IMG/VR virus record: IMGVR_UViG_3300045970_000794
Coordinates: 62,001-126,000 of that record
DNA length: 64,000 bases
Strand: one strand, 5' to 3'
The position numbers and the translations under genes were made by a program. The notes under the pieces are model-generated. The model searched no databases. It saw only the letters and a list, made by a program, of their open reading frames with translations, and was not told the DNA's origin. Shown piece by piece: positions 2,364 to 3,251 of this stretch (its first letter is position 1; each line of letters starts with the position of its first letter).

Positions 2364-2400
2364 TAACCCTTGAGGGATTCGAACCCCCAAATCTCTTCGT
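2364..2400 (-). pseudogene. 3' half of a disrupted canonical tRNA (Arg-like)
   Basis: ACGAAG AGATTT GGGGG TTCGAAT CCCTC AAGGGTT A; AAGGGTT pairs with GGCCCTT of the 5' half at 3221-3251. Confidence 0.8.
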
Positions 2401-3069
2401 TTATATTATCTCATATTTTTTACACCATTTTCTAACAGCATTATCACTTACACCATATATTTTTCCAATACCAACAAATGAATTAGAAGCTAGTAACTCA
2501 ATCAATTCTTTTTTATTTGGCCAAATCAATTTTCTATTTTCGAGCCTATCAAACCTAATGGTTCTTTTATCTATTTTATTTTTAGAATTATTAATATTAT
2601 AAACTTTACTACCTTGACAATGAGTATCAAGTGTTGAGTTACAATTTGGGCACGCAAATCTTAAATTATTTAATCTATTATCATTATTAACACCATTTAT
2701 ATGGTCCAGTATTAATACTAATTTATCACCCATCCATTCACCAATATTACCACATTTAAAACATTTATATTCTATTAAATTATCATCCATTATTCTTTTT
2801 TTAACGCTACCTCTACCACAATGTGAATTATGACAAAATAATTTATCATAATCAAGTTTATTTAACTTACCTTCACTCTGTAATTTTTTAGTAATTTCTG
2901 ATTTACTTAAAAAATGGTCAGTATTAATTGACCATTCGTTTAATTTTTTATTTAATAATCTATAAGAACTAGCTGATTCATTTCTATTAAATGCTAATAA
3001 AACTTGTCTTAATGTTTCTGAATTTAATACAATATCTTGTAAAATTTCTTTTTCATATTTTATTTTCAT
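2401..3069 (-). CDS. HNH homing endonuclease
   Basis: CFKC...LILDHINGVNNDNRLNNLRFACPNCNS HNH motif, C-terminal HTH. Confidence 0.9.
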   Translation of the reverse strand: MKIKYEKEILQDIVLNSETLRQVLLAFNRNESASSYRLLNKKLNEWSINTDHFLSKSEITKKLQSEGKLNKLDYDKLFCHNSHCGRGSVKKRIMDDNLIEYKCFKCGNIGEWMGDKLVLILDHINGVNNDNRLNNLRFACPNCNSTLDTHCQGSKVYNINNSKNKIDKRTIRFDRLENRKLIWPNKKELIELLASNSFVGIGKIYGVSDNAVRKWCKKYEII

Positions 3070-3119
3070 AATCGAACCTTTATTATATAAATATTATGAT
3101 ATAATTAAAAGTTCGATTT
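3070..3119 (-). promoter_or_regulatory. inverted repeat enclosing a TATTTATA late-type motif, abutting the HNH start codon
   Basis: AATCGAACTTT...TATTTATA...AAGGTTCGATT-ATG on the minus strand. Confidence 0.6.
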
Positions 3120-3128
3120 ATCATTTTG

Positions 3129-3207
3129 TACGGATGGAGGGACTCGAACCCCCAGTTGCAACTCCATTACGATTACTGAGTTCGTAGCTCAGCTCGGTTA
3201 CATCCGC
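3129..3207 (-). tRNA. non-canonical tRNA-Arg(ACG), D-arm rearranged
   Basis: GCGGATG/CATCCGT acceptor; 8-nt linker; CTGAG-CTACGAA-CTCAG anticodon arm; 22-nt insert containing AATGG; GGGGG-TTCGAGT-CCCTC T arm. Confidence 0.75.
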
Positions 3208-3220
3208 ATATAAATTATGT

Positions 3221-3251
3221 GAAGTGCTGTATCCAATTTAGCTAAAGGGCC
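3221..3251 (-). pseudogene. 5' half of a disrupted canonical tRNA (Arg-like, GGATA D loop)
   Basis: GGCCCTT TA GCT AAATTGGATAC AGC A CTTC; CTTC pairs with GAAG of the 3' half at 2364-2400. Confidence 0.8.

Follow-up and report, generated by a model that had tools for sequence, protein, structure and literature searches.

Endonuclease genes in phage tRNA clusters and split genes

Endonuclease genes that reside in phage tRNA clusters, cut tRNA genes, and drag neighboring tRNA genes along are established. T4 SegB sits in a tRNA cluster, cuts within tRNA genes, and drives the inheritance of the flanking tRNA genes as well as segmental rearrangements of tRNA regions (PMC2330249, PMC13096335). SegB is a GIY-YIG enzyme that is located between genes and recognizes the T-arm motif (PMC2330249). 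The F-Tfl HNH nickases of T5 are likewise free-standing homing endonucleases of phage tRNA clusters. Homing endonuclease genes are also carried by group I introns in the anticodon loops of bacterial and phage tRNA genes (PMC3984707). In protein genes, free-standing endonuclease genes can be inserted without an intron, and the damage is compensated by another device, as in fractured genes with split inteins (PMC2677866). In Aeromonas phage Aeh1, nrdA is split by mobE. Homing endonucleases are thought to survive inside genes only when an intron or intein hides the damage.

In a 362-kb freshwater phage, a tRNA-Arg gene is cut in two by an 821-nt insert that carries a homing-type HNH endonuclease gene and a complete, unusually built tRNA-Arg. 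As related phages repeat the layout, it looks like a selfish element that brings its own spare tRNA. The locus shares with the SegB system an endonuclease gene embedded in a tRNA array, but here an HNH gene sits inside a tRNA gene, at position 38/39, together with a putative replacement tRNA of the same identity. As in the group I introns, tRNA halves flank an endonuclease ORF in the anticodon arm and invasion of intact alleles would be expected. However, no ribozyme was found, the halves lack 8 nt and cannot be rejoined into a tRNA, and function would be rescued by a passenger gene instead of by splicing. The fractured protein genes are rescued by subunit assembly or split inteins, whereas here an RNA gene would be rescued by a second copy within the insert. 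In full-text literature searches, no endonuclease gene was found that sits inside a tRNA gene without an intron and carries a replacement tRNA of the same identity.

Organization of the split tRNA-Arg locus

The analyzed window comprises 64,000 nucleotides (bases 62001-126000) of a 362,102-bp virus record with direct terminal repeats that was assembled from a pond metagenome. The GC content is about 30%. Region 2300-6700 of the window is the tail of a tRNA array that is interspersed with four endonuclease genes. The genome has about 40 tRNAs called by ARAGORN, and many anticodons occur twice. The features of the locus are listed in Table 1.

Table 1. Features of the split tRNA-Arg locus and its surroundings (window coordinates).
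Feature	Coordinates	Strand	Length	Description
Canonical tRNA-Arg(CCT)	3598..3526	-		Arg block upstream of the split gene
D-less tRNA-Arg(TCG)	3518..3440	-		Arg block
D-less tRNA-Arg(TCT)	3431..3352	-		Arg block
Canonical tRNA-Arg(TCT)	3345..3274	-		Arg block
tRNA-Arg 5' half	3251..3221	-	31 nt	Positions 1-30: acceptor GGCCCTT; positions 8-9 TA; D arm GCTA / AATTGGATA / CAGC; A26; CTTC (four bases of the anticodon stem)
Spacer	3220..3208	-	13 nt	ACATAATTTATAT
Inner tRNA-Arg(ACG)	3207..3129	-	79 nt	No D hairpin; 7-bp acceptor, TAAC, short helix closing an extended anticodon arm, single strand TAA-n-GGAGTTG-n-AAAT, T arm
Hairpin	3118..3070	-	49 nt	Arms ATCGAAC / GTTCGAT; loop with promoter-like motif TATTTATATAAT; 3' arm covers the AAAGG ribosome-binding site
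HNH endonuclease gene	3069..2401	-	222 aa	Intact; TAA stop at 2403..2401
Spacer	2400	-	1 nt	A, after the stop codon
tRNA-Arg 3' half	2399..2364	-	36 nt	Positions 39-73: CGAAG; six-base variable loop AGATTT; T arm GGGGG-TTCGAAT-CCCTC; AAGGGTT; discriminator A
Intrinsic terminator	2353..2329	-		11-bp stem followed by a T run; closes the tRNA array; 10 bases after the 3' half
Relative of the D-less family, Ile(TAT)	4066..3986	-		See last section

The two halves were recognized in an initial annotation made from the sequence alone, and this observation is confirmed with all its coordinates and pairings. The acceptor strands pair 7/7 (five Watson-Crick and two G-U pairs), and CTTC pairs with GAAG. 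Acceptor complementarity alone is weak evidence, as shuffled acceptors find a 7/7 partner with a loose D-arm test in about 8-10% of trials. The assignment therefore rests on three other observations. First, the whole body resembles Arg tRNAs: among 812 distinct tRNAs from all fetched loci, 24 of the 40 nearest are Arg and 15 of these are Arg(ACG), and the best match carries the same six-base variable loop. Second, homologous halves are present in relatives, with identities of 27/31 and 31/36 in locus L195 (L numbers designate the loci fetched for comparison). Third, compensatory changes occur between loci in the acceptor, D, anticodon, and T stems.

The initial annotation placed the split at the anticodon, which does not hold. 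Aligned with intact Arg(ACG) tRNAs (stem, CTACGAA loop, stem, AGGTT), the interrupted gene has a canonical Arg(ACG)-type body, its 3' junction lies at position 38/39, and positions 31-38, including the anticodon, are missing. Natural intact Arg(ACG) genes of this type are present, for example, in L144, L092, and L119. The annotation also counted A2400 as part of the 3' half. The ACG at this start is A2400 plus C39-G40 and not the anticodon. Reading ACGAA as the anticodon plus positions 37-38 was rejected, since it leaves no room for the stem and the variable loop and conflicts with the alignment to L005, L192, and intact Arg(ACG) tRNAs. The hexamer ACATAA follows both the 5' half, where it starts the 13-nt spacer, and the 3' half.

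The locus is not a recognizable intron. No group I or group II intron match was found by Rfam searches at E<=10 in window 2340-3530, and none at E<=0.1 in the split loci L019, L195, L192, L194, and L180. The ORF runs to the end of the insert, leaving only the 1-nt spacer. Profiles of the tRNA-splicing endonuclease (PF01974) and of RtcB (PF01139) have no match in the 362-kb genome, while control genomes score. An Rnl1-type ligase is encoded about 2 kb downstream. ARAGORN in intron mode does not call the gene at default settings, and at lowered stringency it invents a Leu(UAA) with a poor stem. This mode is unreliable in tRNA arrays, as it stitched unrelated neighbors into 106 "intron" calls, of which only those with two orphan halves as exons were kept and then read by eye. 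A bulge-helix-bulge reading of the AT-rich helices next to the junctions was dropped, because no such endonuclease exists in the genome and the sequences are not conserved.

The HNH endonuclease gene

The HNH protein matches phrog_10822 at 4.7e-40 and four further HNH PHROGs, whereas the Pfam HNH match is weak (17.9 bits against a cut-off of 21.4). The translation shows the motif DHINGVNNDNRLNNLRF (DH..N..N), two CxxC pairs, and a C-terminal helix-turn-helix-like tail, so that the catalytic and zinc-binding residues expected for an HNH domain are intact. A large protein collection holds 568 homologs at E<=1e-30, but a tblastn search of deposited phage genomes found only three distant matches. 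In 160 loci fetched through the HNH gene, it almost always lies in a tRNA array, is co-oriented with the tRNAs, and often touches the next tRNA with its stop codon. The homologs lie in many different arrays with different neighbors, and architectures are mixed within one well-supported clade, which agrees with the sporadic presence and variable neighbors among related genomes expected of free-standing homing endonucleases.

The gene is preceded by a conserved hairpin with the arms TTCGAAC / GTTCGAA. Its loop holds a GATATTTAT(A)-type motif that also precedes other genes of these phages, and the 3' arm covers the ribosome-binding site. In the window, the fold has -15.5 kcal/mol and a z of -4.8, and 0/200 shuffles are as stable. 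The same element precedes homologous HNH genes in L005, L006, L108, L110, and L189-L196. By analogy with T4 endonuclease genes, read-through transcripts would be translationally silent and only transcripts started inside the hairpin would be translated.

Recurrence of the layout in related phages

A maximum-likelihood tree of 31 HNH homologs yields a 100/99-supported clade of 19. Every locus of this clade that was inspected has an Arg tRNA gene or an Arg-type half beside the HNH. Five further distinct loci of this clade (L195, L192, L005/L107, L194) have a split Arg tRNA that encloses the HNH gene and a whole Arg(ACG) tRNA. Within the clade, a 97/90-supported subclade of 12 contains five split loci, two with a single half, and five with none. 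The order 5' half, Arg(ACG), HNH, 3' half is found in the window, L195, and L192, while the order 5' half, HNH, Arg(ACG), 3' half is found in L005/L107 and L194. Only a decayed 3' half is left in L191 and only a 5' half in L190. No halves are present in L188, L189, L197, L196, and L193. Decayed or single halves were noted in L191, L194, L190, and L108. The halves are therefore dispensable. The passenger is D-less in the window, L005, L194, L188, L189, L197, and L191, but canonical in L195, L192, L190, and L196.

Outside the Arg clade, more distant homologs enclose other tRNAs. In L019, a CUA-anticodon tRNA is split cleanly after position 38 by HNH plus a complete CUA tRNA. In L180, probably a G73/CCA (Trp-type) tRNA is split around a tRNA-Trp plus HNH, but this case is weaker because the 5' half has a poor D arm. 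In L060 and L068, tRNA-Lys(CUU) is split at 38/39 by a related HNH gene alone. The insertion in L019, L060, and L068 loses no tRNA base. The enclosed tRNA matches the split one in identity, namely Arg(ACG) in six loci and CUA in L019. The 3' junction is at, or within four bases of, position 39 in every case, whereas the 5' junction differs everywhere: positions 31-38 are absent in the window, 29-38 in L005, and about 35-38 in L195.

Between loci, the halves differ largely by paired substitutions. Acceptor pair 5:68 is C-G in the window and T-A in L195, and 6:67 is T-A and C-G, respectively. The D stem reads GCTA/CAGC, GTTT/AAAC, GCTC/GAGC, or GTGT/GCAT in different loci, the anticodon stem is CTTCG/CGAAG in one locus and CACGG/CCGTG in another, and the T stem is G-C in one and A-T in another. 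Nearly all stem positions remain paired in the window, L195, L192, and L005, although the adjacent HNH genes are only 65-74% identical in DNA and a neighboring MazG-like housekeeping protein is 44% identical between the window and L005.

No uninterrupted, HNH-less allele of this phage was found in the runs and collections searched. Exact-pattern scans of viral contigs for either half returned nothing, a degenerate 3'-half pattern returned only the contig of L005, and a degenerate 5'-half pattern returned only intact tRNAs. Four DNA sequencing runs showed only the source phage and an identical low-depth copy. A synteny search with the MazG-like neighbor recovered only the contig of L005, and the genes downstream of the HNH in L188-L195 are not homologs of this neighbor. 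No RNA run was listed for the locus.

Proposed mechanism

The locus is best explained as an intron-free homing-endonuclease cassette lodged inside a phage tRNA-Arg(ACG) gene, a reading that is held with moderate confidence. In this view, the HNH enzyme would cut intact canonical Arg(ACG) genes of co-infecting relatives in or near the anticodon arm. Recombinational repair would then copy the segment between the halves, that is the complete Arg(ACG) tRNA, the hairpin with an internal promoter, and the HNH gene. The halves would be remains of the invaded gene that serve as homology arms for the next invasion. The interrupted gene would be dead as a tRNA, because positions 31-38 are gone and nothing is there to splice it. 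CGN decoding would be kept by the passenger, whose sequence or layout around the cut site differs from the target. The analysis itself establishes the anatomy, the lack of a ribozyme or splicing enzymes, the recurrence of the layout, the clade-specific linkage of the HNH to Arg tRNA genes, the stems of the halves that are kept paired across loci, and the decay or loss of halves in some relatives. Cleavage and its site, homing, immunity of the passenger, non-function of the halves, and the charging and decoding by the passenger are inferred.

The interpretation of the initial annotation, that a homing cassette invades a tRNA gene and supplies a non-cleavable replacement tRNA, is partly supported. 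One tRNA-Arg gene is split by a cassette that holds an HNH gene and a whole tRNA-Arg(ACG), and this is not a one-off. The alternative architecture, however, does not define the passenger, as the enclosed Arg(ACG) tRNA is canonical in L195 and L192, and the order of tRNA and HNH differs between subclades. Relatives with the D-rearranged Arg(ACG) beside an intact canonical tRNA and without an HNH had been named beforehand as evidence against co-mobility, and D-less Arg tRNAs commonly occur with no HNH of this family beside them. In L091 (ACG), no HNH of this family was detected anywhere in the 10.5-kb locus. In seven of eight independent contigs, no HNH match lay within 2 kb of a D-less Arg tRNA, and in the eighth (L096) a weak partial match lies about 1.5 kb away. 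This speaks against obligate co-mobility.

Neutral vertical decay of one ancient split would not keep the stems paired. Either each split captured a working Arg(ACG) gene fairly recently, as repeated homing would do, with the arms kept fresh by conversion against new targets, or the halves are under selection of their own. Broken or single halves, close relatives without halves, and the missing anticodon loops favor the first reading, which remains an inference. On the other hand, the window and L005 are syntenic. The split could therefore be old and vertically inherited, in which case the well-kept stems would point to selection on the halves rather than to repeated homing. The varying order and passenger type show that the unit is not rigid, and differing 5' junctions beside a constant 3' junction are not predicted by a simple double-crossover homing model.

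A possible basis for the inferred immunity of the passenger lies in its sequence or layout around the putative cut site. The five Arg-type 3' halves all start with C39 and have a G-rich T stem. Five of the six HNH-linked canonical passengers (L195, L190, L196, L006, L110) have A39 and a T stem starting TGGGT or GTGAG, while the sixth (L192) has C39 and a T stem starting TTGGG. The D-less passengers put about 17 extra bases between the anticodon arm and the T arm. Either change could spoil a putative recognition site that spans positions 39 to about 55.

In this explanation, the damage of the insertion appears to be offset by a spare copy of the destroyed gene, which would make the element portable to any genome that holds the target tRNA. 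If confirmed, it explains why tRNA fragments and duplicated isoacceptors pile up in the tRNA arrays of large phages, offers natural endonucleases aimed at a defined tRNA-gene site, and suggests that conflict with DNA endonucleases, and not only with host RNases, shapes phage tRNA sequences.

Alternative explanations

An unlikely but surviving alternative is local debris. The HNH, or one of the other three endonucleases in the array, would have cut within a tandem block of Arg tRNA genes, and sloppy repair would have left a 5' and a 3' fragment around a neighboring tRNA and the HNH. Nothing would move as a unit, and the passenger would simply be the neighboring gene. In line with this, tRNA fragments and partial duplications are common around these genes (L108, L140, L165, L190), SegB drives segmental rearrangements (PMC13096335), the order and type of passenger vary, the 5' junctions all differ, and the same hexamer follows both halves. 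However, the nested layout recurs in at least six distinct loci with a nearly constant 3' junction and a passenger of the same identity as the split gene. Moreover, the two halves of each locus match each other in the acceptor and anticodon stems, so they come from one gene and not from two neighbors.

Improbable, too, is that the halves are kept by selection for an RNA-level role. In the transcript, they would pair into a tRNA-like clamp (acceptor, D, and T arms) that directs RNase P and 3'-end processing or stabilizes the HNH message or the passenger precursor. The stems stay paired in the window, L195, L192, and L005 despite 25-35% divergence of the adjacent HNH DNA, only the anticodon loop, which such a role would not need, is lost, and a terminator follows directly. 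Against this, close relatives lack the halves altogether or keep broken ones (L188, L189, L197, L196, L191, L194), and RNA evidence is absent. A related and similarly doubtful reading is that the halves are not dead but associate or are ligated after the passenger and the HNH message are cut out, with the phage's own Rnl1/Pnkp-type repair enzymes as candidates, or form a clamp that controls the cassette's RNA. Either way, this would be protein-dependent tRNA splicing, or split-tRNA biology, in a bacterial virus.

A true intervening sequence that is removed by, for example, host RNases and joined by the Rnl1-type ligase and a Pnkp-type kinase to give a working tRNA is very unlikely: although relatives carry Pnkp-like genes just past the array, insertions in L019, L060, and L068 are clean, and a tRNA-Leu gene in the same genome is split cleanly, eight nucleotides including the whole anticodon are missing in the window, the loss differs in L005 and L195, and neither a ribozyme, a BHB-type endonuclease, nor RtcB was found.

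A tRNA-Arg family without a D hairpin

D-armless tRNAs are known from mitochondria (PMC4394434), and the inner tRNA resembles them in the missing D hairpin, the extended anticodon helix, and the normal acceptor and T arms. In contrast to these, the phage family keeps a conserved GG-containing single strand that is moved to the 3' side of the anticodon arm, is restricted to Arg anticodons in its core, and sits beside canonical isoacceptors in double-stranded DNA phages. Phage tRNAs that escape host tRNA-cutting defenses also duplicate a cellular or phage tRNA with altered features, but carry point changes in the anticodon loop (PMC10264068, PMC11555353). Here a whole arm is rebuilt, and the pressure may come from DNA endonucleases as much as from RNases. 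The plan was not found described in the full-text searches, and a blastn search with the inner tRNA had no match among 50,697 deposited phage genomes. The family is widespread and supported by covariation, is an apparently functional bacterial-virus tRNA, and is worth study in its own right.

The inner tRNA scores 33.8 bits on the Rfam tRNA model RF00005 (cut-off 29). The alignment skips the 15 D-arm positions and inserts about 18 bases before the T arm, so the canonical cloverleaf with a D hairpin between positions 10 and 25 is absent. Three genes in the window (Arg ACG, TCT, and TCG) and members in at least 15 viral contigs found by a pattern scan share one plan: acceptor, TAAC, a 2-3-bp helix that closes the anticodon arm from outside, the anticodon arm, TAA, the partner strand, the conserved TAA-n-GGAGTTG-n-AAAT strand, and the T arm. 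In a 13-sequence alignment, 95% of cells pair, 19 of 23 pairs show changes on both sides, and 0/500 shuffles are as high, nor does any slid control come near. All 17 pairs of the acceptor, anticodon, and T stems vary, and 16 show changes on both sides. Aminoacylation and use in translation are inferred from this covariation and the restriction to Arg anticodons.

The outer helix has the compensatory variants CGA/TCG, CAG/CTG, and CCC/GGG. RNAalifold independently predicts this helix, pairing columns 12-13 with 37-38 around the anticodon arm, and no D hairpin. In a structural model, the strand that normally forms the 3' side of the D stem leads into the anticodon stem, and the GG-bearing D-loop element follows the anticodon arm. 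The helix that normally stacks on the anticodon stem would thus be kept with changed connectivity. A covariance model built from the alignment scores the inner tRNA at 90.7 bits and finds more members above 80 bits, all with Arg anticodons. It also finds relatives of 41-68 bits with other anticodons, such as the Ile(TAT) tRNA in the window.

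Additional split, deviant, and possibly amplified tRNA genes

A second split tRNA is found in the same genome outside of the window. It is a class II tRNA-Leu(UAA)-type gene with a perfect acceptor and a 5-bp anticodon stem. The anticodon loop harbors a 459-nt insert that consists almost entirely of a small HNH ORF, the stop codon of which touches the 3′ part. No tRNA base is lost, no ribozyme match was found, and an intact Leu(UAA) gene is located 200 nt away.

Throughout the genome, many anticodons are encoded twice, once as a canonical tRNA and once as a long or D-less variant (Arg, Ile, Asn, Trp, His, Gln, Pro, Val, and others). 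The phage seems to keep a parallel set of structurally deviant tRNAs. In addition, stretches between tRNAs carry perfect 7-bp terminal complementarity (for example GATGTGG ... CCACATC) but have no recognizable tRNA interior. These may be further deviant tRNA-like RNAs or decayed genes. A tRNA with a CUA anticodon is of the amber-suppressor type (labeled “Pyl” by ARAGORN) and is accompanied in the window by a tmRNA gene (Rfam, 72.6 bits). The HNH and the neighboring ORFs read normally under table 11.

In L109, a locus with an HNH homolog, four or five tandem copies of a class II tRNA-like unit share one acceptor (AGTCCTG / CAGGACT). The copies are spaced 300–450 nt apart, each with a long interior, and may represent amplified or interrupted Ser/Leu-type genes next to the HNH homolog.

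Coordinates of the additional features (window positions unless another record is named)
Feature	Position	Strand
Split tRNA-Leu(UAA)-type gene	G000:C1 (same genome, outside the window) 39767-40312; L105:16267-16812	minus
Anticodons encoded twice	3352-3518, 3986-4066, 5761-5842, and 6355-6530; whole genome	
tRNA with CUA anticodon and tmRNA gene	9732-9807 and 18950-19364	
Rnl1-type RNA ligase	3-641 (G000:C1:61880-62491)	minus
Three further endonuclease genes	4160-4744, 5053-5709, and 5845-6231	minus
Regions with the shared hexamer ACATAA	3208-3220 and 2358-2363	
Stretches with terminal complementarity	3700-3810 and 4885-4965	minus
Joint in run X2 (second pond sample)	between 4723 and 3041	
Tandem class II tRNA-like units	L109:830-3011	

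Endonuclease genes in the array and putative RNA repair genes next to it

Three more endonuclease genes are interleaved with the tRNAs, namely a second HNH (phrog_2255), a GIY-YIG-type homing endonuclease (phrog_314), and a small endonuclease (phrog_15137). Each of them is preceded by the TATATTTATAT-type motif. The Rnl1-type RNA ligase lies just past the array, and relatives (downstream genes of loci L188-L195) carry AAA_33 plus tRNA_lig_CPD (Pnkp-like) genes in the same place. Together, these look like a tRNA repair module of the T4 kind next to the tRNA genes.

Possible traces of rearrangement in the array

The 5′ half of the split tRNA-Arg gene is followed by the same hexamer that follows the discriminator of the 3′ half, which may be a trace of a deletion that fused position 30 to a tRNA trailer. 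In run X2, a low-depth contig (3.9x) joins the start of the second HNH gene to the start of the first, with 21 unrelated bases between them, and may be a rearranged variant of the array.
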